64,000 nt of DNA from the sequence record NC_070963.1. One strand, given 5' to 3'. Under the pieces are notes generated by a model. It had not been told where the DNA came from and did not search any database. It saw only the letters and a list, made by a program, of their open reading frames with translations. This document shows positions 16,326 to 60,597 of this stretch, piece by piece. Made by a program: the position numbers and the translations under genes. Each line of letters starts with the position of its first letter. Position 1 is the first letter of the stretch.

Positions 16326-16334
16326 TTTAATTTT

Positions 16335-20344: not shown

Positions 20345-20658
20345 ATAAGACGTGGATATTTGATTTGGATGGAACTCTACTCAAACACAATGGGTATAAG
20401 AATGGTGGGGAAGAATTGCTTCCTGGTGTAAAAGACTTCTTTTCAAAAATATCAAAGGATGATAGGATTGTTATTTTGACTGCCAGAGATACAAAATATC
20501 AACAAATTACTGAAAAGTTTCTTAACGATAACGGGATTAGGTTTGACCATATCATTTATGATTTACCCATAGGTGAAAGGATACTATTCAATGATAAAAA
20601 ACCAAGTGGTCTTAAAACCGCATATGCTTATAATTTAGATAGAGATTCTGGACTATGA
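20317..20658 (+). CDS. HAD-superfamily phosphatase
   Basis: IFDLDGTL, LTAR, NDKK motifs. Confidence 0.8.
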   Translation: MVGSNYSDLNKTWIFDLDGTLLKHNGYKNGGEELLPGVKDFFSKISKDDRIVILTARDTKYQQITEKFLNDNGIRFDHIIYDLPIGERILFNDKKPSGLKTAYAYNLDRDSGL

Positions 20659-23474: not shown

Positions 23475-23498
23475 AATAACATATAATCTTTATTATAT

Positions 23499-24934: not shown

Positions 24935-24935
24935 G

Positions 24936-43984: not shown

Positions 43985-45493
43985 GTGGCAAATCAAAATT
44001 TCAAAGTCAAAAACGGACTTGAAGTAGGAACTGGTGTAACTATAAGTGCTGGTATTGTAACTGCTTCTACTTTTAGTGGAAATGCTACCAGTGCAACTTA
44101 CGCTATAACAGCAGGAGTATCAACATATTCTGGAGTATCTGGATTCTCTACGTTCTCTGGATATTCTAATGCTTCTGGAGTATCTACTTTCTCTGGATAC
44201 TCCAATGCTTCTGGAGTCTCAACGTTCTCTGGATATTCTAATGCTTCTGGAGTATCTACTTTCTCTGGATACTCTGATACCACTGGATTCTCTACATTCT
44301 CCGGATATGCAAATGCTTCTGGAGTCTCAACGTTCTCTGGATATTCTGATACTACAGGTTTCTCAACGTTCTCTGGATATTCTAATGCTTCTGGAGTATC
44401 AACTTATTCTGGAGTATCTGGATTCTCTACGTTCTCTGGATACTCTAATACCACTGGATTCTCTACGTTCTCTGGATACTCTGATACTACTGGATTTTCT
44501 ACGTTTTCTGGATACTCTAATCTTTCAGGAATATCGACTTATGCTTCTAATGCTGGAATTGCAACTACAACAACAAATATACCAAACTTAACTGGTGATA
44601 TTACTTCTAACGGAACAGCAACTTCAATTGCTTCTGGAGTTATTGTCGATGATGATATTAATGCTTCTGCCGCTATAGCAGTATCTAAACTAGCAGCATC
44701 AACAATTTCTGGAGTTACTTTAGGAAATAATTTAAGCACTCTTACTTTAAATACATCAGGAACTGGTTTATCAGGTTCCACGACTTATAATGGATCGGGT
44801 TCTGCAACATTTACTGTTGCATCAAACGCTACAAGTTCTAACACTAATTCCACAATTGTTGCAAGGGATGCTTCCGGAAACTTTAGTGCTGGAACTATAA
44901 CTGCAACGACCTTTAGTGGTTCTGGTGCATCTTTAACTTCATTAAATGCTTCTAATCTTTCTTCAGGAACAGTTCCAACAGCAACACTTGCATCCGGAAC
45001 TGCAAACTCGACAACGTATCTAAGAGGAGATCAAACTTGGGCATCCATTAGTGGTGGTGCTACATTATCAAATGACACCACAACAAACGCAACTTACTAT
45101 CCAACATTTAGTTCAACAACTTCGGGGACATATTCAACTGCATATGTTTCAAATACTAAATGCACTTTTAACCCATCAACAGGAACTTTATCAGCAACGG
45201 TATTCACGTCACTTTCTGATAGAACACAAAAAACTGATATAACTCCAATTACAGATGCGATTAAAACTGTAAAACAACTTCAAGGTGTTAAGTATAAGTG
45301 GATAGATAATCATAATAAAGAATCAATCGGTGTGATTGCTCAAGACATTGAAAAGGTATTACCGGAAGTTGTAAATCAAAATCCAGATGGACTTAAGTCA
45401 GTGTCTTATGGAAACATTGTTGGATTATTAATTGAAGCAATTAAAGAACAACAAGTTCGTATTGAAGAATTGGAGAGAAAATTAAATGCCTAA
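43985..45493 (+). CDS. Tail fibre with C-terminal intramolecular chaperone (peptidase S74)
   Basis: SDRTQK...IGVIAQD...YGNIVGLLIEAIKEQQ; GTG start. Confidence 0.88.
   Translation: MANQNFKVKNGLEVGTGVTISAGIVTASTFSGNATSATYAITAGVSTYSGVSGFSTFSGYSNASGVSTFSGYSNASGVSTFSGYSNASGVSTFSGYSDTTGFSTFSGYANASGVSTFSGYSDTTGFSTFSGYSNASGVSTYSGVSGFSTFSGYSNTTGFSTFSGYSDTTGFSTFSGYSNLSGISTYASNAGIATTTTNIPNLTGDITSNGTATSIASGVIVDDDINASAAIAVSKLAASTISGVTLGNNLSTLTLNTSGTGLSGSTTYNGSGSATFTVASNATSSNTNSTIVARDASGNFSAGTITATTFSGSGASLTSLNASNLSSGTVPTATLASGTANSTTYLRGDQTWASISGGATLSNDTTTNATYYPTFSSTTSGTYSTAYVSNTKCTFNPSTGTLSATVFTSLSDRTQKTDITPITDAIKTVKQLQGVKYKWIDNHNKESIGVIAQDIEKVLPEVVNQNPDGLKSVSYGNIVGLLIEAIKEQQVRIEELERKLNA
44085..44565 (+). 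repeat. In-frame 36-nt/12-aa tandem repeats (SGYSNASGVSTF and variants)
   Basis: About a dozen near-identical units. Confidence 0.9.
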
Positions 45494-46520
45494 TCAGTTT
45501 TTATCACCAGAGGGAGATTTAGAAACATTTAATTATTTTGTAACTGAATATTGGTTAATTGACCAGTGGGTTGGTGATACTTTGTGGACTTGGGGTGCTA
45601 ATAGTAGTGGACAACTAGGAAACAATACAACAACTATTAGATCTACTCCAGTCACAACATTCGCTGGTGGAACCAACTGGAAACAAGTTTTTTCTGGACC
45701 TGATCACACAGCAGCAATCAAAACTGATGGAACCTTATGGACTTGGGGTGGTAATTCTTTTGGACAACTAGGAAACAATACGACAACTAATAGTCCTACT
45801 CCAATTACAACATTCTCTGGTGGAACCAACTGGAAACAAGTTTCTTGTGGATTTTATCATACAGCAGCAATCAAAACTGATGGAACCTTATGGACTTGGG
45901 GTTTTAATTCTTATGGACAACTAGGAAACAATACAATAATCAATAGAACCACTCCAGTCACCACATTCGCAGGAGGATTCGACTGGAAACAAGTTTCTTG
46001 TAAAGGTTATACTGTGGCAGCAATTAAAACCGATGGAACCTTATGGACTTGGGGTTGGAATATTTATGGACAAATAGGAGATAATACATCAACCCAAAGA
46101 AATACTCCAGTCACAACACTTGCGGGAGGAACCAACTGGAAACAAGTTTTTTGTGGAGAATTTTATAATCAAGCAATCAAAACTGATGGAACCTTATGGG
46201 GATGGGGTTTTAATGTTTTTGGACAACTAGGAAACAATACAACAACCGATAGATCTACTCCAGTCACGACATTTGCTGGTGGAAACAACTGGAAACAAGT
46301 TTCTGCTGCAGCGTTTCATACAGCAGCAATCAAAACTGATGGAACCCTATGGATTTGGGGTAATAATAATAATGGAAACTTAGGAAACAATACATCAACC
46401 GATAGAATAACTCCAGTCACAACATTTGCAGGAGGAACCAACTGGAAACAAGTTTGTAGCGCCGGTAATAATACAACAGTAGTTACATCAGGAACTGATC
46501 CTACATTCTTCATCTCATAA
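45486..46520 (+). CDS. RCC1/BLIP-II repeat beta-propeller A (6 repeats)
   Basis: 51-aa units LWTWGxNxxGQLG...TNWKQV...[10 protein letters not shown]. Confidence 0.9.
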   Translation: MPNQFLSPEGDLETFNYFVTEYWLIDQWVGDTLWTWGANSSGQLGNNTTTIRSTPVTTFAGGTNWKQVFSGPDHTAAIKTDGTLWTWGGNSFGQLGNNTTTNSPTPITTFSGGTNWKQVSCGFYHTAAIKTDGTLWTWGFNSYGQLGNNTIINRTTPVTTFAGGFDWKQVSCKGYTVAAIKTDGTLWTWGWNIYGQIGDNTSTQRNTPVTTLAGGTNWKQVFCGEFYNQAIKTDGTLWGWGFNVFGQLGNNTTTDRSTPVTTFAGGNNWKQVSAAAFHTAAIKTDGTLWIWGNNNNGNLGNNTSTDRITPVTTFAGGTNWKQVCSAGNNTTVVTSGTDPTFFIS

Positions 46521-46537
46521 ATATTTCAAAAAGTCAT

Positions 46538-47182
46538 ATGTACGCACTTGTTAATGGTCAAGAATTAAGATTAGGACCAATCGCATTCAACTATAGAATG
46601 ATTAATGATGAACTAGAAGAACTTGAAGTTGATTTCAGAGTGACTTCGCAAAGTTATCAATCAGTACCTATTTCAATTACTGAAGACATTAAGATTCTTC
46701 CAGCAAGATATGATAATCCAGAACACGATTCAAAATTTGAATATCTTTCAAATGTCACTCACGAAATTACAGAGACTGAAGTTATTTTTAGACACGATAA
46801 AGTTTCAAAGTCACTTTATCAAATCAAGGACGAATATAAAGCAGGAGTAAAACCAGAGAGACAAAGAAGAGAAAATACTACAATTACCGTAACAATACAA
46901 GATACAGAACTTACTGTATCAACAAGTAGAGAAAGTAGATTAGAATTCATTTCTAAACTATTTGGAAATGATGGACCTTACAACTTTAAGTTTGATAGTG
47001 GTGTTTGGTTAGAAATTACTAAAGTAGATTTAGAATACATAATTTCTCAAATTGATGCAAAAGTTCAGGAAGCATTTGATTGGGAACTTGCAAAACTTGC
47101 AGAGATTGATGCTTGTGTAGATGGTGAAGCAGTTTATGCAGTTGAAATTACTCCACCTCCAGTAGAAAGACCTGTAATTTAA
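46538..47182 (+). CDS. DUF4376-like tail-fibre-assembly protein
   Basis: VKPERQRRE...STSRESR...VQEAFDWE pattern; position among fibre genes. Confidence 0.6.
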
Positions 47183-47183
47183 A

Positions 47184-48401
47184 ATGCCCTATCAACCAAC
47201 TCTTAATTTTAAAACTTCTAGTGGAACTGATTTAGGTAATCTAGGATGGATTACCAAAGAATACTTGATGAGTGTTTATCCACAAATTGCTGGTCAATTA
47301 ATTACTCCGGAATTATGGACTTGGGGTCGTAATTCTTTTGGAGCACTAGGAAACAATACAACCACCAATAGTAACACTCCAATCACTACATTCTCTGGAG
47401 GAGCAAACTGGAAACAAGTTGCTTCTGGAGGTTATTATGTAGCAGCAATCAAAACCGATGGAACCCTATGGACTTGGGGTCGTAATCAATATGCACAACT
47501 AGGAGACAATACAACAACCAATAGATCCACTCCAGTCACAACATTCGCAGGAGGAACTAACTGGAAACAAGTTGCTTGTGGTGCTAATCATACAGTAGCA
47601 ATCAAAACTGATGGAACCTTATGGATTTGGGGTCAAAATACTATTGGACAACTCGGAGACAATACAATAGTCAATAGATCCACTCCAGTCACAACATTCG
47701 CAGGAGGAACCAACTGGAAACAAGTTGCTAGTGGATTACATACAGCAGCAATTAAAACTGATGGTACTTTATGGGTTTGGGGTGACGGTGCTAATGGACA
47801 ATTGGGAAATACTCTTAATAGACCTGTAAGTACTCCAATCACAACATTTGCTGGAGGAACTAATTGGAAACAGATAAGTTGTGGTTATCAACATACAGCA
47901 GCAATCAAGACTGATGGAACTTTATGGACTTGGGGTCAAAATATTTTTAGTTTTTTTCAATTAGGAATCAATGATTCCGTATCTAGAAATACTCCAGTCA
48001 CAACATTTGCGGGAGGAACCAACTGGAAACAAATTGGTTGTGGACGCCAATATACAGCAGCAATCAAGACTGATGGAACCTTATGGACTTGGGGTCAAAA
48101 TAGCAATGGACAACTAGGAGACAATACAACAACTGCAAGATGCACTCCAGTCACAACATTCGCAGGAGGAACCAACTGGAAACAAGTTTCTGGTGGAGGT
48201 TTTCATACAGCAGCAATCAAAACTGATGGAACTTTATGGACTTGGGGTAGTAATGCTTATGGACAATTAGGAAACAATACAACAACCCAAAGAAACGCCC
48301 CAGTCACAACATTTGTAGGAGGAACCAACTGGAAACAAGTTTCTGGTGGAAGTTCTCACACAACAGCAATAAGAACTTCGGACGATTTACAAGGTATCTA
48401 A
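47184..48401 (+). CDS. RCC1/BLIP-II repeat beta-propeller B (7 repeats)
   Basis: Same 51-aa unit. Confidence 0.9.
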
Positions 48402-48437
48402 TATCTGATATAATACTTCTATATCATACTCAAAAAT

Positions 48438-49787
48438 ATGAACCCACTTGAACTCGTTGCAAAGACACTATATTCATTTAAAGAACAGCAATTAACTTTT
48501 GAACTGCTTGATGCTTTTGGAAAACAAGCACAAGTATTTTCACAATATGATGAGATTGCAAAGATTTTTTTTGAACTTCGTAATTTTTCTAAAGCAATTG
48601 AGTATGGTGAAAAGTCTCTTAAATTAGCACAGACAAAAGAAGAAAAATATGTAACAGCAAAGAACCTAATTAATGCTTATAATCAATCAAACTATCCAGA
48701 AAAATCCATAACACAGATTGAAAAACTAAAGAAACAAAATCCTCAAGATACTGAACTTCTTCTAGAAGAAACCTTTGCGTATTCTGCTATTAATCAAAAG
48801 GAAAAGTCGGAGAAACTGCTATTCAATCTTCTTCAACGAAAACTACCAGAAGAGATTGAAAGAAAGGCATATCATAATCTATCAGGTCATTATTTTCGTA
48901 AAGATGACCTTCATACAGGACTTCAACACTTTCTCAAAGCAGGAGAAGTAGAGGCATATAAGAATCAAAAACATCCTGATTTTGAAAAGTGGGATGGAAC
49001 TGTAACTCAAGGAAGAACTATTATTGTAGATAATCAATGTGGTGCTGGTGATGAGGTGATTCACGTTCGGTTTATGAAGAACCTCAAAGACTTGGGAATG
49101 AAACCAATCTGGAGTTCCACTCGTAGAGAACTTGTAGAACTCTTCAAACATAATGGTTATGATGCCGTTTGTATTTGGGACAAACCAGAGTTTCCAAAAG
49201 ATGCCTGTTGGGTTTATGGTCTTGCACTTCCTTATTATCTTAATTTGGAACTCAAAGATATGGGAAGAGAACCTTATCTTTCAACACTTCCAGAGTTTGA
49301 TAAGAAATGGGAATGGATGAAAGAAGATACTGGGTATAAGGTTGGTATGTTCTGGGCGTCTAGTTCTGGATTTGAACAGAACTCTTTCAGGTCAGTAGAA
49401 CTTAAAGATTATATGAGTGTTCTGGGAAACAAAGGATACTCATTGTATTCACTTCAAACTTATACTGACAATAAGGATGCAAATGAGTATCCAGAAATCA
49501 AACAGTCACTGTCAGTCAAGGGTAGAGAGTTTGCTGACACATTCTCTATAATTAAGAACCTTGATTTAGTTGTGACTTCTTGTAGTTTTGTTGCTCACGT
49601 TGCAGCATCTATGGGTAAAGAAGTTTGTGTTTTTGTTCCAATTATGGAATATTATGTTTGGACTTCTTCTACAGGAAAATGTATGTGGTATGGAGATAAC
49701 GTTCATCTCTTCCGTCAAAAGAAACCAAGAACTTGGGATGCACCCATTAAAGAGTTTTGGGAGTTTATGAATGATAGAAGAGTATAA
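48438..49787 (+). CDS. TPR-repeat protein fused to a GT9-like glycosyltransferase domain
   Basis: Helical TPR-like N-terminus; QCGAGDEVIHVRF; DLVVTSCSFVAHVAASMGK. Confidence 0.78.
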   Translation: MNPLELVAKTLYSFKEQQLTFELLDAFGKQAQVFSQYDEIAKIFFELRNFSKAIEYGEKSLKLAQTKEEKYVTAKNLINAYNQSNYPEKSITQIEKLKKQNPQDTELLLEETFAYSAINQKEKSEKLLFNLLQRKLPEEIERKAYHNLSGHYFRKDDLHTGLQHFLKAGEVEAYKNQKHPDFEKWDGTVTQGRTIIVDNQCGAGDEVIHVRFMKNLKDLGMKPIWSSTRRELVELFKHNGYDAVCIWDKPEFPKDACWVYGLALPYYLNLELKDMGREPYLSTLPEFDKKWEWMKEDTGYKVGMFWASSSGFEQNSFRSVELKDYMSVLGNKGYSLYSLQTYTDNKDANEYPEIKQSLSVKGREFADTFSIIKNLDLVVTSCSFVAHVAASMGKEVCVFVPIMEYYVWTSSTGKCMWYGDNVHLFRQKKPRTWDAPIKEFWEFMNDRRV

Positions 49788-50229
49788 TTTATCCTTCCTC
49801 AACCTCAATTCCATCAAGAACAAACTTTTACAAATACAGACCGCTTCTCACGGTCTTGTGACAAAAGGTGTTTCTACTTATAATCACGGAATGCCTGTTC
49901 TAATGTATCCAGAACTGATAGGATTAAAAACGATTATCAAAGAATATATTATAATCTATTGTGAGAAGTATAATATTCCACCACTGGAGTTTATCAATAG
50001 TTGGTTTAATATTTCACAATCAGGAAATAAACTCAAAGCACATAAGCACGAAGAGAGTATTGTTAGTGGAGCATTTTATATTTCTGGAAGAACACCTTTG
50101 ATTTTTCCAGATGTATCAATTCAACCTTATCCGGGTTTATTAGTTATTTTCTCAAGCGATTTGGTTCATTATACAGAAGAAGAAACAGAAGAAAGAATTG
50201 TGATTAGTTTTAATACAGATTACCTATGA
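49771..50229 (+). CDS. 2OG-Fe(II) oxygenase-like protein
   Basis: WFN...HKH...SGAFY...LVIFSSDLVH...RIVISFN. Confidence 0.75.
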   Translation: MIEEYNLSFLNLNSIKNKLLQIQTASHGLVTKGVSTYNHGMPVLMYPELIGLKTIIKEYIIIYCEKYNIPPLEFINSWFNISQSGNKLKAHKHEESIVSGAFYISGRTPLIFPDVSIQPYPGLLVIFSSDLVHYTEEETEERIVISFNTDYL

Positions 50230-50909
50230 GATTTCATACCTTTTATACGAAAAACCTTCCAGAACAATTAATTACAGACCACAAAAGAGTTTGTGATTGT
50301 ATTGGCATTGATGTGACTTATCATATTCAAGATGCAATAGATGATTATGATACTCTTTATACTGCTCACGGAAAGTTTATGACTTCTGTGATGGAGCAAG
50401 AAGAAGTTGCTTGCTTCTTAGATATTGATTGTCTCCCACATAGTAAAGAACTCCTAGAAAAAGCATACAACTGGGCAGTAGAAAATAAATCTTTTGTTGG
50501 CAATGCTCAAAACATTTCTCATACGCAAATGAGAAATCATATCTATGCTGCTGCTTCTTGTTTGATTATCACTAAAGATGCTTGGAATAATTTGGGAAAT
50601 CCAGATTTTACTTGGTTTATGCAAAATGAAATTCAAATAGATACAGCACAAATTCTAACTTTAAGAGCAGACCAGATTGGAATGCCTTATCAATTAATGT
50701 ATCCAGTTGGTTATGATGGTCCAGAAGAATACAAACTTTCTGGATATGGAATGTATGGAACAGGAACTTTATATCCAGCAACTTGGCATTATTTTAGAAT
50801 CAGTAAGTTCAAAAATCAAATACCAGACCTTTGGACAACACGAGTAAATAATATATTAGAAAATCAAAAAATCATTTCAAATCATTCTTCGTGTTTTTAT
50901 GAATTATAA
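50226..50909 (+). CDS. GT-A-like hypothetical protein
   Basis: FLDIDCLP DxD motif. Confidence 0.55.
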   Translation: MRFHTFYTKNLPEQLITDHKRVCDCIGIDVTYHIQDAIDDYDTLYTAHGKFMTSVMEQEEVACFLDIDCLPHSKELLEKAYNWAVENKSFVGNAQNISHTQMRNHIYAAASCLIITKDAWNNLGNPDFTWFMQNEIQIDTAQILTLRADQIGMPYQLMYPVGYDGPEEYKLSGYGMYGTGTLYPATWHYFRISKFKNQIPDLWTTRVNNILENQKIISNHSSCFYEL

Positions 50910-51666
50910 ATTTTTGTTTTTAGTTGGGTCTGCAATTAATCATTTTAAAGAAGAAGACTTGAGTGCTTTTAAGGCAGAAGAGAGATTCCAACAAACACTG
51001 GATACAATTAAATCAATTAAAGATAAAGTTCCTGATGCTTATGTTTTAATCTATGAAGGGTCTGAAACTTCTATCAAACAAGAATACAAAGATAAGTTTA
51101 TAGAACAATCTGATTTATTTCTTGAGTTTGGAAATGACCCCTATATGAAATCTTTGTATGAAAATCTTCATAGAGACCCAGATAAATTTACATTTGTGAA
51201 ATCTATGTTGGAATGTAGATGTTTGCAATTAGTTCTAAATCATATGATGGAGCATAATATCTTTAATGATGCAATAAGAGTATTCAAATTAAGTGGTAGA
51301 TATAAACTGAATGAATACTTTGATATTAATGATTACAAAACTAGGTTCTTGATGAATAAGTATGTAATGAAATATTATGACTATGAAGAAAGATTTGAAG
51401 ATATTGAAAACATCTATGCAACTCTTTATGGATGTAAAGGAAGTATTGTGACTGGTTTGTGGTCATTTGATAGGTTTTTGTTCAATGATATTTTCAATGT
51501 TCTTCAAAGAAGTTTTGAATATATGGAAAGAGCAATTCAATTAACTGCTGGAATTGATATTGAACACTCTTTTTATCATTTTATAGACAGAGATAAGATT
51601 TTAAATGTTCCAGTTCTTGGATTTGATTTAATTAAAGGTATGAATGGAGATAGATATTCATTATGA
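50899..51666 (+). CDS. Hypothetical protein (glycan-island type)
   Basis: ERFQQTLDTIKSI and FKLSGRY motifs; coupled in the operon. Confidence 0.55.
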   Translation: MNYKFLFLVGSAINHFKEEDLSAFKAEERFQQTLDTIKSIKDKVPDAYVLIYEGSETSIKQEYKDKFIEQSDLFLEFGNDPYMKSLYENLHRDPDKFTFVKSMLECRCLQLVLNHMMEHNIFNDAIRVFKLSGRYKLNEYFDINDYKTRFLMNKYVMKYYDYEERFEDIENIYATLYGCKGSIVTGLWSFDRFLFNDIFNVLQRSFEYMERAIQLTAGIDIEHSFYHFIDRDKILNVPVLGFDLIKGMNGDRYSL

Positions 51667-52367
51667 AAATTGCAATCTTTTATCATACCTTTCAGTCAGG
51701 TATGGGTGCTTTTGTCTATCAATCTCAAATTCATAGGTTGTATTGTTCTGGATTAATTGATGCTGCTGATTACATTCATATTGGTGTGAATGGTGATCAA
51801 GAGATGTTTAATGTTCCAGAAAAAGCAAAAGTATCTTACAATACTAACTGGAAAGAAGAAACAGAAACTCTCATAGCACTCAAAAACTTTGCCTATGAAA
51901 ATCCAGATTATAAGATTTTGTATTTTCATATGAAAGGTGCAAGCAAAGAAACTCTTGTTGCAAACTCTTGGAGATTGATGATGGAATATTTTGTGATTGA
52001 CCGGTGGAAAGAGTGTGTAGAACATTTGAATGATTATGACTGCGTAGGGCAGACCTATAAACCTCTTGGACCAACTTTATGGGGTGATGGGACTATGACC
52101 AGTAACGAAGGTATTGGATGCTATTGTGGGAACTTCTGGTGGGCAAATGCGTCTTATATTCAAACACTAGACCATAACTATTTGAATACTAATTATCGTT
52201 TTGATAGAGAGTTCTGGATTGGAACCAATAAGAATGTAAAGGCAAAGTCATTTATGGAATATGCTGATAGTGATTACATTGCCGATAATCATCCCATCCC
52301 ATTAAAGAAAGGTATGAGTGACTATGAACCTTATACACATTACTTCCGTGAGGTAGAATACTTATGA
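51663..52367 (+). CDS. Hypothetical protein, possibly glycosyltransferase-like
   Basis: ILYFHMKG, GNFWWANASYI, REFWIG. Confidence 0.55.
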   Translation: MKIAIFYHTFQSGMGAFVYQSQIHRLYCSGLIDAADYIHIGVNGDQEMFNVPEKAKVSYNTNWKEETETLIALKNFAYENPDYKILYFHMKGASKETLVANSWRLMMEYFVIDRWKECVEHLNDYDCVGQTYKPLGPTLWGDGTMTSNEGIGCYCGNFWWANASYIQTLDHNYLNTNYRFDREFWIGTNKNVKAKSFMEYADSDYIADNHPIPLKKGMSDYEPYTHYFREVEYL

Positions 52368-52732
52368 GAGAGTGTAGAGAATGTACTGCTTGCTGTACTT
52401 GGTTACAAGGGTCTGCTTATGGATATGAGTTTGGTGGTGGAAAGTCTTGTAAGTTCTTATGTGAGAATGGGTGTAGTGTTCATAAGGTACGACCAAAAGT
52501 ATGTGAAGGATATTTCTGTGCTTGGGCACAAGAACTTTTAGCGGAAGAAATGAGACCTGATAAGTGTGGTGTTCTTGCTTCTGTGGAAAATAATGAAAGA
52601 GGACAATATATTAAATTAGTTTCAATTCAAGAAGAAATAAATACAGATATATTAGAATATTTTAAAAATTGGAGTAGAATGATGAATACTCCTGTGATTT
52701 ATTCAAACAATAATTCTTGGGAAGTTCTCTAA
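52364..52732 (+). CDS. Cys-cluster (YkgJ/CxxCxxCC-like) protein
   Basis: CRECTACC...CKFL...CSVH..RP..CEGYFC. Confidence 0.7.
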   Translation: MRECRECTACCTWLQGSAYGYEFGGGKSCKFLCENGCSVHKVRPKVCEGYFCAWAQELLAEEMRPDKCGVLASVENNERGQYIKLVSIQEEINTDILEYFKNWSRMMNTPVIYSNNNSWEVL

Positions 52733-53913
52733 TGCCTACTTTTTACAATTACACCGAGAATGGAGTAGTATATTCTTTTGATGATGTCTTTGTGCCTGCA
52801 GATGCTTTTAGGCAGGGAAACTTATGGGTTTGGGGTCGCAATAATTTTGGACAACTGGGAGACAATACAACAACCAATAGATCCACTCCAGTCACAACAC
52901 TTGCTGGTGGGGCAAACTGGAAACAAGTTGCTTGTGGAGGTAGTCATACTGCAGCAATTAAGACTGATGGAACCATATGGACTTGGGGTCTTAATAGTCA
53001 GGGACAACTAGGAGACAATACAACAACCTGGAGATCAACTCCAGTCACTACATTTGCCGGAGGAACCAACTGGAAACAAGTTGCTTGTGGAAATAATTAT
53101 ACCGCAGCAATCAAAACTGATGGAACCTTATGGACTTGGGGTGTTAATTTTAATGGACAACTAGGAGACAATACAGCAACCCTAAGAAACATTCCAGTCA
53201 CTACATTCGCAGGAGGAACCAACTGGAAACAAGTTGCTTGTGGGCAATTTCAAACATCAGCAATCAAAACTGATGGAACCTTATGGACTTGGGGTCGTAA
53301 TAATTATGGACAACTAGGAGACAATACATCAGGAACCGATAAATTCACTCCAGTCACAACATTCGCCGGAGGAACCAATTGGAAACAACTTGCTAGTGGA
53401 AGTGTTCATATAGCAGCAATTAAAACAGATGGAACCTTATGGATTTGGGGTCGTAATAATTTTGGGCAACTAGGAGACAATACAAAAACAGATAGATCCA
53501 CTCCAGTCACTACATTTGCAGGAGAAGCAAACTGGAAACAAGTTGCTTGTGGAGGTCTTCATACAGCAGCAATCAAAACAGATGGAACTTTATGGGATTG
53601 GGGTTATAATAATCCTGGACAACTAGGAGATAATACAACAACTAGTAGATGCACTCCAGTCACAACATTCGCCGGAGGAACCAACTGGAAACAAGTTGCT
53701 AATGGTAATGGAGTTGGTTTTAACGCAGCAATCAAAACAGATGGAACCTTATGGATTTGGGGTAGTAATGCTTATGGACAAATAGGAGACAACACTTCGG
53801 GGAGCAATAGACTTACACCAGTCACTACATTCGCAGGAGGAACTAATTGGAAACAAGTTGCTGGTGGATATGATCATACACTAGCATTCACATACATAGA
53901 CGATTATCAGTAA
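52732..53913 (+). CDS. RCC1/BLIP-II repeat beta-propeller C (7 repeats)
   Basis: Same 51-aa unit; ATG at 52732 from a TAATG overlap. Confidence 0.9.
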   Translation: MPTFYNYTENGVVYSFDDVFVPADAFRQGNLWVWGRNNFGQLGDNTTTNRSTPVTTLAGGANWKQVACGGSHTAAIKTDGTIWTWGLNSQGQLGDNTTTWRSTPVTTFAGGTNWKQVACGNNYTAAIKTDGTLWTWGVNFNGQLGDNTATLRNIPVTTFAGGTNWKQVACGQFQTSAIKTDGTLWTWGRNNYGQLGDNTSGTDKFTPVTTFAGGTNWKQLASGSVHIAAIKTDGTLWIWGRNNFGQLGDNTKTDRSTPVTTFAGEANWKQVACGGLHTAAIKTDGTLWDWGYNNPGQLGDNTTTSRCTPVTTFAGGTNWKQVANGNGVGFNAAIKTDGTLWIWGSNAYGQIGDNTSGSNRLTPVTTFAGGTNWKQVAGGYDHTLAFTYIDDYQ

Positions 53914-53931
53914 AAACATTATTTCTTAATT

Positions 53932-54714
53932 ATGAAAACATTATTCTTTCTTTCTGGTCTTCCAAGGTCAGGTTCTACTTTACTTGGGTCAATTCTTTCA
54001 CAACATCCAAAACTTCAGGCAACTCCAACATCTCCACTTGCAGATTTGCTCTGTTGGATTGATGAAGGATTCTCTAAAATAGATCTTCAATATACCTATG
54101 ATAAACCACAAGTAGTGTATAATACTTATAATGCAATACTTGAAAACTTCTATAATCACATAGAGAAACCTTGCGTTCTTGATAAACATCGTGGTTGGTG
54201 TAAGAATGTTTCTTCAATTGAAAAGTTTCTTCATCAAAAACCAAAAATCGTAGCAACCAACAGAAGAATTAGTGAAGTTCTTTCTTCTTATATCTTACTC
54301 ATTCAAAGAAACAATGAAGCAGATAATTTTGTAGATGCTCATTTAAGAAGAGAAGGAAAGGAAATCAATACTGACAATCGTATTGAATGTCTTTGGAAGA
54401 ATTATGTTTGCGATCCTTATGAAAGTTTAGTTTATGGTTTGACTAATTACAGAGACAATATTCATCTTGTAGATTATAATGATCTTACACAAAATCCAGA
54501 AAGAGAACTGAAAAAGATTTATGAGTTTCTAGAAATAGAAAATCATTCACACGATTTCTCAAGTATCTTTAATACTTGTGCAGAAGAAAAAGATCACGAA
54601 TGGGGGATTGATAATCTTCATCAAATTCGTCCCAAACTTCAAAGAACTTCACCACCTCCAGAAGAAGTGATTGGTGAAGAAAACACTCAACTTTATGATA
54701 AATTTAATATATGA
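53932..54714 (+). CDS. Sulfotransferase family protein
   Basis: FLSGLPRSGSTLL PAPS-binding motif; LDK; VDYNDL. Confidence 0.85.
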   Translation: MKTLFFLSGLPRSGSTLLGSILSQHPKLQATPTSPLADLLCWIDEGFSKIDLQYTYDKPQVVYNTYNAILENFYNHIEKPCVLDKHRGWCKNVSSIEKFLHQKPKIVATNRRISEVLSSYILLIQRNNEADNFVDAHLRREGKEINTDNRIECLWKNYVCDPYESLVYGLTNYRDNIHLVDYNDLTQNPERELKKIYEFLEIENHSHDFSSIFNTCAEEKDHEWGIDNLHQIRPKLQRTSPPPEEVIGEENTQLYDKFNI

Positions 54715-55397
54715 TTGAAGTATTTTTAAGACATTGCTATACATCCAAAGTTAATCTTTCAGGTGCAAATCGTCCAGACTGGTGGGATAAAGAAAAGGTA
54801 TTTGAAAACTTCAAGAATACACTCAATTCAGAAACTACAAATTACACAATCATCTTTGATGAGTGTTATGGCAAACAAGAAGACACTTTTCTCAAAGATG
54901 AAAATGCAGTAACGATTAACTGTGGTAAAGAGAGTGAAAGTTTCTGTAAGACATTAGATCATATTCTTTCACAAGACTTTGATGATGATACGATCATTTA
55001 CTTTCTTGAAGATGATTATGTACATCGTCCAGAATGGGATAAAGTTCTTATGGATGGATTTACTCTTCCCGTTCAGTATGTAACTTTGTACGATCACGGA
55101 GATAAGTATCAGGAGATGTATAAGGACTTTATGACTAAAGTTCTTGCCACTAAGTATTCTCATTGGATGCCTACTCCTTCCACGACTAATACTTTTGCAG
55201 TGAAGTTTAAAACACTCAAGGAAGATAAAGAAGTTCATAAACATTTCTCAACTGGATATGAACCTTCCGCAGATCACGGTAAATTTTTAGAACTACATAA
55301 GAGAGGAAGAAATTTAATTTCAAGTATTCCCGGTTATTCTACACATTGTCATTCTCAATTTTTATCGCCTTGTATTGATTGGAGCAAATATTTATGA
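54711..55397 (+). CDS. GT-A-like glycosyltransferase
   Basis: IYFLEDDYVH motif. Confidence 0.65.
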   Translation: MIEVFLRHCYTSKVNLSGANRPDWWDKEKVFENFKNTLNSETTNYTIIFDECYGKQEDTFLKDENAVTINCGKESESFCKTLDHILSQDFDDDTIIYFLEDDYVHRPEWDKVLMDGFTLPVQYVTLYDHGDKYQEMYKDFMTKVLATKYSHWMPTPSTTNTFAVKFKTLKEDKEVHKHFSTGYEPSADHGKFLELHKRGRNLISSIPGYSTHCHSQFLSPCIDWSKYL

Positions 55398-56929
55398 AGG
55401 TTACACTATACGCAATTGCAAAGAACGAAGAAAAAAATATTGAAAAGTTTCTCAAGAACGCAGAGAAATTTAATGATGTCGTTGTAGTTGATACTGGAAG
55501 CACTGATGATACAGTTCAACTACTTAAAGATGCTGGTATAAAAGTTTATGAGCATCCACAGACTCGTGCAGAGTTTGATTTTTCAGTCGCAAGAAATCAG
55601 GCACTGTCTTATGTTGAAACTGACTGGGCATTTGCACTTGACTTTAATGAAGATGTAGATGAGTTTCATCCAGAAGGATTTGGGGTAATTGCTGGCGAAT
55701 TCACTACCTTTAATCATTTGAGATTTGATGATAATGGAAAAGATGAACCTGTTCAATCTAATGAAGTTCATCCTCGTTTTCATAGAACTAAGAATTATAC
55801 TTGGGTCAATGCTGTTCATGAAGTTCCAAACTTTATTCCAACAGAAGATTACTCAAATCCAGTCAGCGTAGATACGACAATTAAGATTACTAAAAAAATT
55901 CATAAGTCTGTAGATAAAGAACTCTTTTACTTTTCAATTTGTGAAAGAGAACATAAGAAAGACCCTACCAACTGGTATTGGATTTGGTTCATTTTCAATC
56001 ACTACTTCAATGTTCAGAATACAGAAAAAGCACTTGAGTATGGTCAAGAATTTTTGAATGTATCCAAACCATACTTCGACAGTTTTAGAATACTTACTTT
56101 CATTCGTTGTAGTCAAATACTTTTAAGTATTGGTGATATGCAAAGAGGTATGAATTATGCCTTTCATGCAGTCAGTGAAGGAATGAATATGGGTGGAGTT
56201 CATCTATCACAAGCATTTGGATATTTGTTTGAACTTTCCAAGAGATTGAATAATCCTAATCTTACAATTTTTGCAACTGGTTTTAATCCAGATATGTTGT
56301 CCGCACCAGAAAGAATTGATGCCATTGATAAATTATTCTTGACTAATCTTGAAGACGTTCCTTCCTGTTGGAGAGGGCATCGTAAGTTTGCCGAATGGTT
56401 AGTCACTCAAGTCAAACCAGAAGTCACTGTAGATCTTGGTGTTGATTGGGGATTCTCTACCTTCTGTTTTGGTATGCCTCGCATTGGTCACGTTTATGGT
56501 ATTGATACTTTTGAAGGAGATCAATTCACTGGCGGAAATCACGGTTCTTATGAGTATGTTCTGAACAAACAAGAAAAACTCTTTATGAAAGATAATGTAA
56601 CTTTCATTAAAGGTCTCTTTGATGATGTTGCAAAGACTTGGGATAAGCAGATTGATATCCTTCATATTGATGGAGATCATGCTTATGAATCTGTCAAGCA
56701 TGATTATGAAACTTGGTTTCCATTTTTAAAAGAAAATGGTATAATACTCTTTCACGATACTTGCATTGAGGAACTGAATGGAAATCAATATGGTGTGAAG
56801 AAATTTTTTGAAGAACTTGATTTACCAAAAGTAACATTTACTCATACTTTTGGACTTGGTATTGCTTCTAAAAACAAAGAATTGATTGAGTTCATTAAGA
56901 CTAATTTTGATTTGGATAAACCTTTATGA
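55394..56929 (+). CDS. GT2 - TPR-like - class I SAM methyltransferase fusion
   Basis: AIAKNEE, VDTGSTD, DFSVARN; helical middle; VDLGVDWG...LHIDGDH...LFHD. Confidence 0.85.
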   Translation: MKVTLYAIAKNEEKNIEKFLKNAEKFNDVVVVDTGSTDDTVQLLKDAGIKVYEHPQTRAEFDFSVARNQALSYVETDWAFALDFNEDVDEFHPEGFGVIAGEFTTFNHLRFDDNGKDEPVQSNEVHPRFHRTKNYTWVNAVHEVPNFIPTEDYSNPVSVDTTIKITKKIHKSVDKELFYFSICEREHKKDPTNWYWIWFIFNHYFNVQNTEKALEYGQEFLNVSKPYFDSFRILTFIRCSQILLSIGDMQRGMNYAFHAVSEGMNMGGVHLSQAFGYLFELSKRLNNPNLTIFATGFNPDMLSAPERIDAIDKLFLTNLEDVPSCWRGHRKFAEWLVTQVKPEVTVDLGVDWGFSTFCFGMPRIGHVYGIDTFEGDQFTGGNHGSYEYVLNKQEKLFMKDNVTFIKGLFDDVAKTWDKQIDILHIDGDHAYESVKHDYETWFPFLKENGIILFHDTCIEELNGNQYGVKKFFEELDLPKVTFTHTFGLGIASKNKELIEFIKTNFDLDKPL

Positions 56930-57282
56930 AAGTTGCAATTCCAATATCAGTAGGAGAGTTAATTGATAAGATTACAATTCTTCAAATCAAATCTCAATAT
57001 ACTGATAATGAATATGTTCTTAAAGAACTACAAGATTTAATTCAAATTGCAAAAGATCTTGGTGTTTATAATGAGACTTACCTGCATTTACTTTTTGCTG
57101 TAAATAGTGTATTATGGGATGTGGAAGATAAATTAAGAGAACTTGAAAAATTAGAAGATTTTGGTTTAGATTTTGTAGAACTTGCTCGTTCTGTTTATAT
57201 TACTAATGACAAACGATCAAAAATAAAACGACAAATTAACGAAGAAACTGGTTCTCATTACAAAGAAGTTAAACTGTATTAA
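56926..57282 (+). CDS. DUF6165-like coiled-coil protein
   Basis: SVGELIDKITIL...LWDVED...ARSVY..ND.R...K..IN. Confidence 0.7.
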   Translation: MKVAIPISVGELIDKITILQIKSQYTDNEYVLKELQDLIQIAKDLGVYNETYLHLLFAVNSVLWDVEDKLRELEKLEDFGLDFVELARSVYITNDKRSKIKRQINEETGSHYKEVKLY

Positions 57283-57284
57283 TT

Positions 57285-58316
57285 ATGAAACGTGCTCTTA
57301 TTACTGGTGGTGCTGGGTTTATTGCCCATCATTTAATTGGACAAATTTTAAAAACAACTGATTGGGAAATTATTACTCTTGACCGTTTAGATTATAGTGG
57401 CAATCTCAATCGTCTTCATGACTTGATGCTTTCTTTTGACCCCAAAGTTCGTAAGAGAGTTAAAGTAGTTCATCATGATCTTAAGGCAGAACTTAATCCA
57501 CTTGTTCGTTATGAAATTGGTCAGGTTGATTATATTCTCCATCTTGCTGCTGGTTCTCATGTTGACCGTAGTATTCAGTATCCTATGGAATTTGTACTTG
57601 ATAATGTAGTTGGAACCTGCAACATTCTTGAGTTTTCTAGATTGCAAAATAATCTAGAAAGATTTATTTACTTCAGTACTGATGAAGTATTTGGTCCGGC
57701 ACCAGATGGGATTAAGTATAAGGAAAATGATAGGTATAATTCAACTAATCCTTATAGTGCAACTAAAGCAGGTGGTGAAGAACTTGCTGTTGCTTATGAG
57801 AATACTTATGGATTGCCAATTTATATCACTCACACGATGAATGTGTTTGGAGAGCGTCAGCACCCTGAAAAATATATTCCAATGTGTATTCGTAGAATTC
57901 GTGATGGTGAAACTGTAACGATTCATAGTGATTCTACCAAGACTATTCCAGGATCAAGACATTATATTCACGCCGAAGACGTTGCATCTGCAGTTTTATT
58001 TCTTTTAAACTATCAAGGATCTTTTGAACCAACTTGGGGAAATGCAAAATGTCCAAAGTTTAATATTGTTGGTTCTGAAGAATTGAATAATCTTGAACTT
58101 GCTCAAATTATTGCTGAAGCACAAGATAAAGAATTGAAGTATGAATTGGTTGATTTTCATTCTTCAAGACCCGGACACGACTTACGTTATGCTTTAAGTG
58201 GGGATAAAATGAAGCAACTAGGATGGGTTCCTTCTAAATCAGTTAAAGAACGCATCGTAGAAGTAGTTAAATGGACTCTTGAAAACAAAAGGTGGATTAA
58301 AAAGTTAAATAAATAA
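57285..58316 (+). CDS. NAD-dependent NDP-sugar dehydratase (RfbB-like)
   Basis: TGGAGFI, HLAAGSHVDRSI, STDEVFG, PYSATK, RPGHD.RY. Confidence 0.9.
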   Translation: MKRALITGGAGFIAHHLIGQILKTTDWEIITLDRLDYSGNLNRLHDLMLSFDPKVRKRVKVVHHDLKAELNPLVRYEIGQVDYILHLAAGSHVDRSIQYPMEFVLDNVVGTCNILEFSRLQNNLERFIYFSTDEVFGPAPDGIKYKENDRYNSTNPYSATKAGGEELAVAYENTYGLPIYITHTMNVFGERQHPEKYIPMCIRRIRDGETVTIHSDSTKTIPGSRHYIHAEDVASAVLFLLNYQGSFEPTWGNAKCPKFNIVGSEELNNLELAQIIAEAQDKELKYELVDFHSSRPGHDLRYALSGDKMKQLGWVPSKSVKERIVEVVKWTLENKRWIKKLNK

Positions 58317-58335: not shown

Positions 58336-59445
58336 ATGGCAAATAATAGGGAGTTATCGCAACTAGGGTCTTTTACAATAGTTAATGATATCAATGGAAA
58401 CATTGGTATTGCGACCACAGCAACTCCCTATGTCGGCATTGGAACCACAAATCCACAAGCAAAGTTACACGTAGTTTCTGATGCGATTGTTGGTGAATTA
58501 AAGATTACAAGTGCTGGGATTGTAACTTCAAATAATCCTGGTGTTACAACTGTAAAGTATTATGGTGATGGTTCAAATCTAATTGGTGTAAATGCCTTTA
58601 ATGTTGTTGGACAACCATTAAATTCAAATCCAGTTTATCCAACCTTTGCTTCAAACATTGGTGTAACCTCTGTAGGAATTGCAAGCACTCAAGTTGCTTA
58701 TATTCCAAACTTTGGATTCTTGGGTATTGGAACCACCGGACCAACTCAAAGATTAGATGTCTTTGGTAACTTAAGAGTTCGTGGTGGAATTTATGATTCC
58801 ACCAATAGTCCTGGAAACTCTGGATACGTTTTAACCTCAAACGGTGCTGACATTGTTTGGTCTAGTGCAGGTGGAATTGGAATTGTAACCAACGCTGCTG
58901 GACTTAATGGTCAGTTACAGTTTAATAGCGTTGGTGTATTTTCTGGAACCAATCAAGTTTATTATGATGTAACAAGTGGAAATCTTGGTATTAACACTGC
59001 AATACCAAGATCTGATTTTGATGTTGTTGGTGACACAGAACTTGAAAGAGTTAGAATCACTGGTGTTACAACCATCGGTCAGATTCAGATTACAACATCT
59101 GGTATTATAACTTCCACAAATCCAGGTGTCACAACAGTTGTTTATTATGGAGATGGTTCAAATCTATTTGGTGTAAGTGCATTTTCTGTTATTAATCAAC
59201 CGATTGCACCTGCTACAGTATTCCCAACGTTTGCAAACAACATTGGAGTCAGTTCAGTTGGTATTGCAACTACTGGGTCTACAAGTTTTGTTTTTATACC
59301 TTCAACTGGAAATGTTGGACTTGGAAGCACGCAACCTTCTTATAAAGTAGATGCTGTTGGAGATATAAATATCACAGGAGCGTATAGGGTTGATGGTCGT
59401 AGTGTTCTTGATGATGCCCTCATTTACTCAATTGTATTCGGATAG
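58336..59445 (+). CDS. Tail-fibre-like protein
   Basis: Two YYGDGSNL...VYPTFA modules shared with the 39327 fibre; late promoter. Confidence 0.75.
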   Translation: MANNRELSQLGSFTIVNDINGNIGIATTATPYVGIGTTNPQAKLHVVSDAIVGELKITSAGIVTSNNPGVTTVKYYGDGSNLIGVNAFNVVGQPLNSNPVYPTFASNIGVTSVGIASTQVAYIPNFGFLGIGTTGPTQRLDVFGNLRVRGGIYDSTNSPGNSGYVLTSNGADIVWSSAGGIGIVTNAAGLNGQLQFNSVGVFSGTNQVYYDVTSGNLGINTAIPRSDFDVVGDTELERVRITGVTTIGQIQITTSGIITSTNPGVTTVVYYGDGSNLFGVSAFSVINQPIAPATVFPTFANNIGVSSVGIATTGSTSFVFIPSTGNVGLGSTQPSYKVDAVGDINITGAYRVDGRSVLDDALIYSIVFG

Positions 59446-59778: not shown

Positions 59779-60597
59779 ATGGCACTTACAAAGATTAGTG
59801 GTGACGTAATTCAAAGCGGAATTGATATTAATATTGGTATTGTCACTGCGACAAGAATTGATGGTGATATAAACGGTAATGTAAATTCAACTGGTGTTTC
59901 TACATTCTCTACAATTAGAGTAGGAACCGCTATTACTATTAGTAGTGGTGTTGTGACTGCTACAAGTTTTGTAGGTAATGTTACAGGGAATGCAACTGGT
60001 CTTTCTGGAACCCCAAACATTACTGTAGGAACCATTGGAGCAACAAGTCTTAATGCTTCTGGTATTGTAACCGCTACAACTTTTTCAGGAAACCTGACAG
60101 GCAACGTCACTGGAAATGCAACTGGTCTTTCTGGAACTCCAAATATTACCGTTGGTTCTATTACGGCAGCAAGTGCTACAATAACTGGTAATGTAAGTGT
60201 TGCTGGAACAGTCACATACGAAGACACAACAAACGTAGATTCTATTGGAGTTGTTACCGCAAGAAGTGGTCTTCAAGTAACTGGTGGGTCTGTTGGAGTT
60301 CTTACATCAAACCCAAGAGCAACTGTTCAGGTCGGAACAACAGTTTTACAGTCAGTCTTTATTACCTCAACAGGTCTTGTTGGTCTTGGTTCAACGGCAC
60401 CAAGAGTATCTCTGGACGCATCACAAGAGACTGATGCTATTGCACTTCCACAAGGCACCACAGCACAACGTCCAGCAGGAAACTCACCATACATAAGATA
60501 CAACACTACCAACAGTGCTTTAGAGTTTTATAACGGCACTGACTGGGTAGAGATTATCAGCGATTATTTTCCAACTGGTTCCACTATATTAGGTTGA
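59779..60597 (+). CDS. Tail-fibre-like protein
   Basis: GNATGLSGTPNITV repeats; LPQGTTAQRP...IRYNTT...EFYNG. Confidence 0.75.
   Translation: MALTKISGDVIQSGIDINIGIVTATRIDGDINGNVNSTGVSTFSTIRVGTAITISSGVVTATSFVGNVTGNATGLSGTPNITVGTIGATSLNASGIVTATTFSGNLTGNVTGNATGLSGTPNITVGSITAASATITGNVSVAGTVTYEDTTNVDSIGVVTARSGLQVTGGSVGVLTSNPRATVQVGTTVLQSVFITSTGLVGLGSTAPRVSLDASQETDAIALPQGTTAQRPAGNSPYIRYNTTNSALEFYNGTDWVEIISDYFPTGSTILG

Follow-up and report, generated by a model that had tools for sequence, protein, structure and literature searches.

The subject of this analysis is an island of putative glycan-modifying genes in the tail locus of Synechococcus phage S-SRM01, a myovirus from fresh water that belongs to the Kyanoviridae and has a genome of 240,842 bp. 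The window that was analysed, a stretch of 64,000 nucleotides, is identical to the final 64 kb of this genome (NC_070963.1), such that a window position equals the record position minus 176842; coordinates given below without a locus name are window positions. The island occupies 48438-58316 and matches genes gp338-gp349 exactly. An initial annotation, made from the sequence alone, had described it as a candidate system, within the tail locus, with which the phage would glycosylate its own virion proteins, and the enzyme island itself is real: its twelve genes all lie on the + strand, and their boundaries are mostly overlaps of 1-17 nt, with just three short gaps of 2-19 nt. GenBank supplies product names for six of the twelve (TPR protein, 2OG oxygenase, regulator of chromosome condensation, sulfotransferase, beta-1,4-glycosyltransferase and nucleotide-sugar epimerase). 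The paper describing S-SRM01 leaves the island undiscussed and does not report virion proteomics. The genes of the island are as follows.

48438-49787, + strand: gp338, TPR (residues ~3-167) followed by a GT9-like GT-B glycosyltransferase domain (~190-446).
49771-50229, + strand: gp339, 2-oxoglutarate (2OG)-Fe(II) oxygenase of the PF13759 type (9e-13).
50226-50909, + strand: gp340, 227-aa protein with a conserved D66-x-D68 after a hydrophobic strand; accessory in the clade at 65-69% identity.
50899-51666, + strand: gp341, 255-aa core protein with no conserved DxD.
51663-52367, + strand: gp342, DUF8361 protein with a predicted nucleotide-diphospho-sugar-transferase or nucleotidyltransferase-like fold.
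52364-52732, + strand: gp343, CxxCxxCC (YkgJ/FliB-type) putative metal-binding protein with eight invariant Cys residues.
52732-53913, + strand: gp344, RCC1 beta-propeller, paralogue c; mid-island, ~70% identical to gp335 and gp337.
53932-54714, + strand: gp345, 3'-phosphoadenosine-5'-phosphosulfate (PAPS)-type sulfotransferase, PF13469/PF00685.
54711-55397, + strand: gp346, 228-aa core protein with an invariant E100-D101-D102 after a hydrophobic strand.
55394-56929 (annotated start), + strand: gp347, GT2 domain (SunS/GmaR-like) and class I O-methyltransferase domain (Methyltransf_24).
56926-57282, + strand: gp348, DUF6165 protein, always downstream of the GT2-methyltransferase gene.
57285-58316, + strand: gp349, RmlB-like NDP-hexose 4,6-dehydratase; accessory.

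The island had been placed between the RCC1 and the fibre genes. RCC1 genes do lie upstream and fibre-like genes downstream, but the description is imprecise because a third RCC1 gene, gp344, which the initial annotation had overlooked, sits inside the island. The statement that export machinery is absent was borne out: the twelve products are all free of membrane segments, none of their 19-residue windows exceeding a hydrophobicity of 1.45, and multi-pass membrane proteins are missing among the products of the real genes of the 64 kb.

The first gene of the island, gp338, had been labelled a TPR-GT9-like fusion. This label proved right, because GT9 hits among its relatives, an AlphaFold2 model with TPR and GT-B parts, and matches found with Foldseek and in BFVD all support it. 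On its own, gp338 gives weak TPR matches in Pfam, and TPRs are also recovered by a profile search of the Protein Data Bank (PDB). A full scan of 1.84 billion representatives returned 21,841 relatives (~9,800 bacterial ones at E<=1e-10), and the segment corresponding to residues ~180-440 recurs three to seven times within TPR giants of 1,300-3,100 aa. Two such relatives, P0246 (a bacterial giant located among housekeeping genes) and P0260, score 74.6 and 58 bits against PF01075, for which the cutoff is 22. The same family is matched by 13 of 53 single-module relatives, and no other catalytic Pfam family recurs among them. For gp338 itself there is no PF01075 match at E<=0.1, which places it below the Pfam gathering threshold for Glycosyltransferase family 9. 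By sequence it is not a GT41 enzyme either, given that Glyco_transf_41 matches neither gp338 nor any of the 53 relatives. The sequence matches of gp338 to OGT structures in the PDB are confined to the TPR part, and the C-terminal domain alone gives nothing significant in a profile search against PDB sequences.

The AlphaFold2 model, built from a 53-sequence alignment, has a predicted local distance difference test score (pLDDT) of 92.1 and a predicted template modelling score (pTM) of 0.90, and consists of a helical repeat array (residues 3-167) followed by a two-lobed Rossmann-type domain (190-446). With the model that BFVD lists for this S-SRM01 protein, it superimposes at a template modelling (TM) score of 0.98. 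When the whole chain was compared with the PDB using Foldseek, SPINDLY was the first match (3e-8), followed by bacterial and human OGTs, with TM scores of ~0.3 for OGT and SPINDLY (SPY). The catalytic half, in turn, gives its best Foldseek superposition on the GT9 enzyme 3tov (TMq 0.41, TMt 0.51, 344 columns). Structural matches in BFVD include phage proteins named GT9, RfaF and Aah/TibC, those named GT9 reaching TMt values of 0.70-0.79. Within the GT-B half, residues G202, G204, D205, R318, C382 and H387 are invariant across relatives that share only 26-37% identity, which argues that this half is a working enzyme. As a source of NDP-heptose for a GT9 'heptosyltransferase', upstream genes for a SIS protein, a kinase/nucleotidyltransferase and a HAD protein were considered. 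This idea found no support, since the SIS protein is KpsF/GutQ-like (112 bits) and not GmhA-like (25 bits) and a match to HddC reached only 22 bits.

The island belongs to a block that is syntenic in ~50 viral contigs (47 IMG/VR loci plus JGI/ENA contigs of <=262 kb), down to 65% identity. The shared order runs fibre, RCC1, DUF4376, RCC1, TPR-GT9, 2OG oxygenase, gp340 (not always present), gp341, gp342, CxxCxxCC protein, RCC1 and sulfotransferase, and continues through a variable slot to gp346, the GT2-methyltransferase and the DUF6165 protein. The variable slot, between the sulfotransferase gene and gp346, gains and loses genes for weak GT2 matches, an FkbM methyltransferase and proteins of no known family. 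RCC1 adjoins TPR-GT9 in every locus that has sequence upstream of the TPR gene. One locus, L029, is reduced to TPR-GT9, the CxxCxxCC protein, RCC1, the sulfotransferase and DUF6165. Within the close clade, identity is 84-97% for the enzymes, as compared with 38-81% for the RCC1 and fibre proteins. Metagenome relatives at 57-94% identity fall into 291 (gp338), 728 (gp346) and 386 (gp342) clusters at the 90% level. The combination of RCC1, TPR-GT9 and CxxCxxCC genes offers a simple genomic marker that is abundant in freshwater metagenomes, where it is represented by hundreds of 90% clusters.

Beyond this clade, RCC1 and TPR-GT9, usually together with the CxxCxxCC protein, recur at 24-50% identity in three other lineages. 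In the freshwater Synechococcus phage BUCT-ZZ01, genes for a tail fibre, a 166-aa protein, a 700-aa RCC1 protein (40%) and a 574-aa GT9-like protein (26%) are consecutive. In AG-345-E08, a marine virus from a single cell of Pacific origin, three RCC1 genes and TPR-GT9 (24%) are accompanied by homologues of gp340 (32%), the sulfotransferase (21%), the 2OG oxygenase, the CxxCxxCC protein (43%), gp342 (42%) and RmlB (88%). The order of these genes is shuffled, they follow fibre-like genes, and the CxxCxxCC gene does not adjoin RCC1 or TPR-GT9; in the distant IMG/VR lineages it is found next to or near them. Those IMG/VR loci (L060-L068) carry one or more RCC1 genes, sometimes a sulfotransferase and a 920-aa GT2-methyltransferase, and then the CxxCxxCC protein, a 180-aa protein and TPR-GT9. 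The most reduced arrangement was seen in a 47.8-kb Pam3-like contig (L059), in which tail genes are followed by RCC1 (50%), the 180-aa protein, TPR-GT9 (32%), a holin and a CHAP endolysin; in the 21 kb examined of this contig there is no other recognised sugar enzyme. The placement in a tail module seen in S-SRM01 is shared by BUCT-ZZ01, AG-345-E08 and L059. Taken together, the distant loci therefore define a recurrent pair of RCC1 and TPR-GT9, which a CxxCxxCC gene usually accompanies; genes for a sulfotransferase and a GT2-methyltransferase are often present as well. The literature that was searched yielded no relevant account of RCC1 proteins in phage tails or of glycosylated tail fibres, and no association of RCC1, TPR-GT9, CxxCxxCC, sulfotransferase and GT2-methyltransferase in cyanophage tail modules.

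Three further observations on these loci may be recorded here. In BUCT-ZZ01 (L055, 6131-9993), the gene annotated as a 'BNR repeat domain protein' is the RCC1 homologue. The 574-aa protein of the same phage consists of the GT9-like domain fused to a domain that elsewhere is the separate 180-aa gene (L059, 9462-10004), so that, to judge from this gene, the 180-aa protein and the GT9-like domain are joined by a gene-fusion link. Finally, the RmlB-like gene, which among the close relatives is present only in the window and in L018, has a counterpart in AG-345-E08 with 88% protein identity (L056, 20714-21736) and is 81.5% identical in DNA to a copy in AG-345-L05. As the other island genes shared with AG-345-E08 are 21-43% identical, this suggests a recent horizontal transfer between freshwater and marine phages.

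The genes immediately surrounding the island are structural in character.

43985-45493, + strand: gp334, tail fibre with a C-terminal Peptidase_S74 chaperone domain (PF13884, 6e-16; PHROG tail fibre); 34% Ser+Thr.
45486-46520, + strand: gp335, RCC1 beta-propeller, paralogue a (PF25390/PF00415); 68-70% identical to paralogues b and c.
46538-47182, + strand: gp336, DUF4376 protein (PF14301, 1.6e-5) with a weak PHROG tail-fibre match; its position is kept in relatives.
47184-48401, + strand: gp337, RCC1 beta-propeller, paralogue b, directly upstream of the TPR-GT9 gene.
58336-59445, + strand: gp350, fibre-like protein that shares repeats with the 1540-aa baseplate wedge protein; downstream neighbour.

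Upstream, the order is a 1,540-aa baseplate wedge protein, the Peptidase_S74 fibre, RCC1, DUF4376 and RCC1, and downstream are fibre-like proteins and a 1,084-aa virion structural protein. With PHROG tail-fibre and virion-structural families on both flanks, the glycosyltransferase genes lie inside a structural module. The neighbouring fibres had been called very rich in Ser and Thr, and the structural proteins do contain 20-34% of these residues as compared with 9-16% in the enzymes, a content that is usual for phage fibres. Segments of the baseplate wedge protein (39327-43949) are 48-63% identical to the 502-aa fibre (43985-45493) and the 369-aa protein (58336-59445), and weaker matches of 30-36% are found in a 272-aa protein (59779-60597). 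The segments common to the wedge and the flanking fibre proteins point to mosaic exchange of fibre modules across the island.

The RCC1 proteins vary considerably in length. The counterpart of gp344 measures 345-1,551 aa in relatives and is made purely of RCC1 repeats. In three loci (L040, 3095-9967; L041, 14308-18960; L017, 13072-16509) the RCC1 genes are enlarged to 1,146-2,291 aa and encode several tandem propellers, and the enzymes beside them are unchanged in size. A fusion of RCC1 to fibre domains was considered for the relatives and rejected, as RCC1 repeats take up the whole length of the long variants.

With respect to the remaining enzymes, the 2OG oxygenase, the Cys-cluster protein, the sulfotransferase and the RfbB-like dehydratase of the initial annotation were all recovered, and its other assignments required some revision. 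The eight Cys residues of gp343 that are invariant in 18 orthologues are C4, C7, C10, C11, C29, C37, C47 and C52. PF03692 is matched by 17 of these orthologues, all below threshold (best E 0.0017); with 16.1 bits, the protein of the window likewise stays under the cutoff of 23. For gp345, a profile search of the PDB returned TPST1 (2.1e-6) and TPST2 (1e-4), the matches covering mainly residues 4-69, that is, the PAPS loop; the CurM sulfotransferase also appears at 1e-4, the sugar sulfotransferase NoeE matches the same P-loop at 2e-6, and PF13469 and PF00685 score about equally. The dehydratase gp349 scores 257.6 bits against TIGR01181 (cutoff 365.1) and carries the Rossmann motif GGAGFIA as well as YFSTDEVFG and YSATK, in which the TDE and YxxxK signatures are present; it is a predicted NDP-hexose 4,6-dehydratase.

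The protein gp347 had been read as a GT2-TPR-methyltransferase. Its GT2 (residues 13-91) and Methyltransf_24 (351-461) domains stand, and the middle TPR does not, as no search detects a TPR between them. The best PDB matches of the GT2 domain are GmaR, a flagellin glycosyltransferase (3.9e-9), SunS (8.5e-9) and ThuS. The top NCBIfam match is likewise SunS (TIGR04195), at 33.4 bits, which does not reach the equivalog cutoff of 350. The methyltransferase domain resembles TylF and 6g7d, which we take to be a mycobacterial sugar O-methyltransferase. The 'several DxD proteins' of the initial annotation were reduced to two, since the motif is fully conserved in gp340 and gp346 and is not conserved in gp341 (50899-51666) or gp342 (51663-52367).

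None of these four proteins has an assigned family of known function. Precomputed Pfam tables on relatives assign gp342 to PF27674 (DUF8361), and its AlphaFold2 model (pLDDT 84.5) is nearest by Foldseek to the cytidylyltransferases IspD/TarI, to GlmU and to GT-A enzymes, at TM scores of 0.45-0.48. Profile searches against PDB sequences gave no significant match for gp340, gp341, gp342 or gp346, and an hhalign comparison of all island families and the known glycosyltransferase families of the window reached a best probability of 7%. In a mixed set of gp340, gp346 and gp341 orthologues, in which the source family is indistinguishable, 6 of 38 gave sub-threshold GT2 Pfam matches (best E 0.018).

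Clues to expression were sought in the promoter motifs around the island, the relevant sites being the following.

46516-46523, + strand: late-promoter-type motif NATAAATA, 22 nt before the start of the gene at 46538.
48386-48414, + strand: sigma-70-like promoter match (TTTACA, 17 nt, TG-n-TATAAT; 11/12; extended -10).
58308-58315, + strand: late-promoter-type motif NATAAATA, 28 nt before the fibre-like gene at 58336.

The NATAAATA motif has been described as a late promoter of cyanomyoviruses (PMC2984593). It occurs 21 times in the window, and 13 of these copies are followed at a distance of no more than 60 nt, and mostly of 22-38 nt, by the start of a + strand gene, when ~1 such placement would be expected (an estimate from the fraction of sequence involved). 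It precedes the genes at 39327, 43985, 46538 and 58336, and none is found inside the island. The sites at 830, 5817, 10019, 11490, 32977, 35116, 39299, 43948, 46516 and 58308, among others, can serve as a map of putative late promoters. In contrast to this relaxed cyanophage form, the exact late promoter of T4, TATAAATA, shows no enrichment in the window (8 found, 5.6 expected). Scans of the window for terminators and sigma-70 promoters did no better overall than on shuffled sequence, and the one site noted from them is the 11/12 match before gp338. It falls in the 36-nt gap before gp338 in S-SRM01 and in the close relatives L007, L012 and L016, whereas most of the other relatives compared (L002-L043) have TAATAAATAC or TCTAAATAC ~30 nt before the start of TPR-GT9. 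This looks like a promoter swap, which could alter the timing of expression. From the motifs, the island is probably expressed late by read-through, although early expression is conceivable in S-SRM01 itself.

We propose that the island is a phage-specific cytoplasmic module that modifies proteins of the tail module, RCC1 or fibre, with the RCC1 propellers as the likeliest substrates, and we assign this reading a probability of roughly 0.5. What the analysis shows directly is which genes are present, how their products fold, that they are soluble, and that the genes form an operon whose order and linkage are conserved; action on protein, RCC1 as a substrate and as a part of the virion, and the order of the steps are inferences. 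Protein is favoured as the target because the enzymes are soluble, gp338 has a TPR capture domain, the core is conserved, and the nearest solved relatives of three enzymes appear, from sequence and model comparisons, to be protein- or peptide-directed (SPINDLY/OGT, GmaR/SunS and tyrosine sulfotransferase). RCC1 leads among the candidate substrates because it stays linked to TPR-GT9 where the gene order is shuffled and also in a small phage to which the pair has been transferred and in which no other recognised sugar gene was seen in the 21 kb examined. The idea that the phage decorates its own fibres or adhesins thus gains comparative support as far as tail-protein targets are concerned, and the RCC1 propellers are a more specific candidate than fibres in general. 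In such a scheme, the TPR domain of gp338 would bind the substrate protein and its GT9-like GT-B domain would add the first sugar, mirroring FlmG, OGT and SPINDLY. The SunS/GmaR-like GT2-methyltransferase gp347, together with gp340, gp346 and gp342, would extend or supply the glycan and O-methylate it, and gp345 would sulfate the glycan or a tyrosine. Accessory roles may fall to the 2OG oxygenase gp339 and the CxxCxxCC protein gp343, and RmlB, where present, would supply a 6-deoxyhexose precursor.

A number of considerations weigh against this proposal. The modification of virion proteins and the presence of RCC1 in virions are argued from genes alone, and the likeness to protein-directed enzymes is weak or at the level of fold (TM ~0.3 for OGT/SPY; 33 as against 350 for SunS), while the TPST E-values of gp345 derive mainly from the PAPS loop. 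LPS (lipopolysaccharide) cores are the classical substrates of GT9 enzymes, and RmlB, GT2 enzymes, O-methyltransferases and sulfotransferases are also standard in O-antigen clusters. The gene linkage could reflect co-regulation or a common role in adsorption instead of a pairing of enzyme and substrate, and four island proteins are without clear function. In addition, the sigma-70-like promoter that replaces the NATAAATA-type motif before gp338 could allow early expression.

The usual reading of cyanophage glycosyltransferase clusters is remodelling of host surface glycans (PMC7824862, PMC2984593, PMC3037559, PMC12801897). Applied here, it would have the island place sugars, methyl groups and sulfate on the LPS O-antigen, core or exopolysaccharide by way of the lipid-carrier and export machinery of the host, so as to block superinfection or keep progeny off infected cells and debris. 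We regard this as the main alternative, although an unlikely one. The RmlB, GT2, sugar O-methyltransferase-like (6g7d, TylF) and sulfotransferase (NoeE loop) domains are all typical of glycan clusters, yet no candidate for a membrane step of O-antigen, LPS or capsule synthesis (initiating phosphoglycosyl transferase, flippase, polymerase, ligase or transporter) is encoded within the 64-kb window, for which host enzymes could substitute. GT9 is the LPS heptosyltransferase family, but the TPR domain attached to it is left unexplained, substrate-capture TPRs being typical of protein-directed enzymes (PMC7591256). The gain and loss of genes in the variable slot does resemble that of O-antigen loci, and a sigma-70-like promoter stands before gp338 in S-SRM01; the core of the island, however, is conserved and not sporadic. 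Nor does action on host glycans account for the RCC1 linkage, which recurs in distant lineages including a 48-kb phage whose lone TPR-GT9 gene lies between tail and lysis genes. Furthermore, a separate classical cluster with bacterial-type Gmd and Fcl is already present at 14.7-28.2 kb.

It is also conceivable, although improbable, that RCC1 is a partner and not a substrate, either as a lectin for a soluble or surface-exposed glycoconjugate made by the enzymes or with the TPR protein serving mainly as an assembly chaperone or adaptor for RCC1, its GT domain being of secondary importance. The linkage of RCC1, TPR-GT9 and CxxCxxCC leaves the direction of action undefined, TPR domains are general protein-binding modules, and the DUF4376 gene between two RCC1 genes has its weak tail-fibre PHROG match. 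We know of no lectin activity, however, and the invariant GT-B residues of gp338 argue for a working enzyme. We judge still less probable a pathway to a small molecule or secondary metabolite (sugar-derived, methylated, sulfated and hydroxylated), or modification of phage DNA. Iyer and colleagues did distinguish a second kind of cluster in cyanophages, which combines 2OG oxygenases with methyltransferases and sugar enzymes and is predicted to produce a metabolite (PMC7824862), and a 2OG oxygenase and a methyltransferase are likewise encoded in the island, along with a sulfotransferase and a protein of nucleotidyltransferase fold; Pfam and NCBIfam scans of the window proteins found no carbamoyltransferase, halogenase, nonribosomal peptide synthetase or polyketide synthase (NRPS/PKS) or similar core enzyme. 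As for DNA, the 2OG enzyme gp339 is of the PF13759 and not the TET/JBP type, and cyanomyoviruses are reported to be without DNA glycosylation (PMC2984593). The tail location and the RCC1 linkage are unexplained by either.

Returning to the modification of tail-module proteins, the closest precedents are FlmG, the flagellin O-glycosyltransferase of Caulobacter crescentus (PMC7591256), and OGT/SPINDLY, which like gp338 are soluble cytoplasmic proteins with an N-terminal TPR and a C-terminal GT-B domain. The TPR domain of FlmG binds its flagellin substrates (PMC7591256), and genes of this type lie beside those for a surface structure, as gp338 does. They differ in that the catalytic domain of gp338 is GT9-like and not GT41, and its presumed substrate is an RCC1 propeller and not flagellin. 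The GT9 heptosyltransferases WaaC and WaaF share with gp338 the GT-B fold (closest structure 3tov) and the PF01075 family matched by its relatives. TibC and AAH are GT9-like autotransporter heptosyltransferases that modify adhesin proteins in the cytoplasm. In contrast to them, gp338 has no iron-finger, the putative metal-binding Cys protein is encoded by a separate gene, and no NDP-heptose pathway was found in the window. For the GT2 domain of gp347, the best solved relatives are the peptide S-glycosyltransferases SunS and ThuS and the flagellin O-GlcNAc transferase GmaR, although its scores are far below the family cutoffs and those enzymes lack the C-terminal fusion to a Methyltransf_24 domain.

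Among viruses, the initial annotation had invoked giant viruses, in which capsid glycosylation is established; the comparison holds as an analogy only. Virion glycosylation in mycobacteriophages was reportedly described by Freeman and colleagues in 2023 (cited in PMC12801897). Such systems include methyltransferases besides glycosyltransferases. The likeness lies in phage-encoded glycosyltransferases among structural genes, whereas the two differ in their enzyme families, in the type of host and in what is presumed to be the substrate, and the island, known from genes alone, adds a sulfotransferase, a 2OG oxygenase and the CxxCxxCC protein. The cyanophage 'LPS' clusters of P-SSM2, S-SM2, S-SSM7, S-SCSM1 and S-SCSM2R (PMC3037559, PMC12801897, PMC7824862) resemble it in combining several glycosyltransferases with NDP-sugar enzymes in a large cyanomyovirus genome, and RmlB-type genes are common to the island and its marine relatives. 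Those clusters, however, are found close to hli/phoH and tRNA genes, occur sporadically, are polymorphic and encode bacterial-type enzymes, whereas the island is in a tail-fibre module, conserved, interleaved with RCC1 genes and composed mostly of families without a curated model.

A bolder and more tentative extension, which we regard as somewhat doubtful, is that in several cyanophage lineages TPR-GT9, CxxCxxCC, GT2-methyltransferase, sulfotransferase and 2OG oxygenase mature RCC1 receptor-binding proteins into methylated, sulfated glycoproteins. If true, this would to our knowledge be the first multi-step protein glycosylation-sulfation described in tailed phages of Gram-negative-type hosts. 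Cyanophage adsorption proteins help to decide which picocyanobacteria die, and their chemistry is barely known; such a system would add a hidden layer to cyanophage host recognition that host range predicted from protein sequence alone would miss. Cyanophage sugar genes would then form two classes with different roles, those in a classical cluster of host type and those in a protein-directed module linked to the tail genes, and their default reading as modifiers of host 'LPS' would need to be split accordingly.

The second sugar cluster of the window, at 14750-28186, is larger than the island, and none of its products has a membrane segment. Besides Gmd, which at 541 bits exceeds the equivalog cutoff, it encodes an Fcl-like GDP-fucose synthase, the KpsF/GutQ-like SIS isomerase, a 508-aa fusion of a nucleotidyltransferase to an APH-like kinase, a small HAD phosphatase and an FkbM methyltransferase, together with FUT8/NodZ-like, GT2, GT10, two GT11, GT7-like and GT25 glycosyltransferases. 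The cluster adjoins the hli/psbA region, which the S-SRM01 description paper assigns to ORF316-321 (ORF, open reading frame), with a split psbA, and published cyanophage 'LPS clusters' lie near a region of this type (PMC3037559). It fits action on host surface glycans better than the tail island does, and it could also supply fucose or other sugars to the tail-locus enzymes. Directly after it, near the split-psbA region, a 188-aa ORF at 28255-28821 contains a NUMOD3 motif of the homing-endonuclease type.

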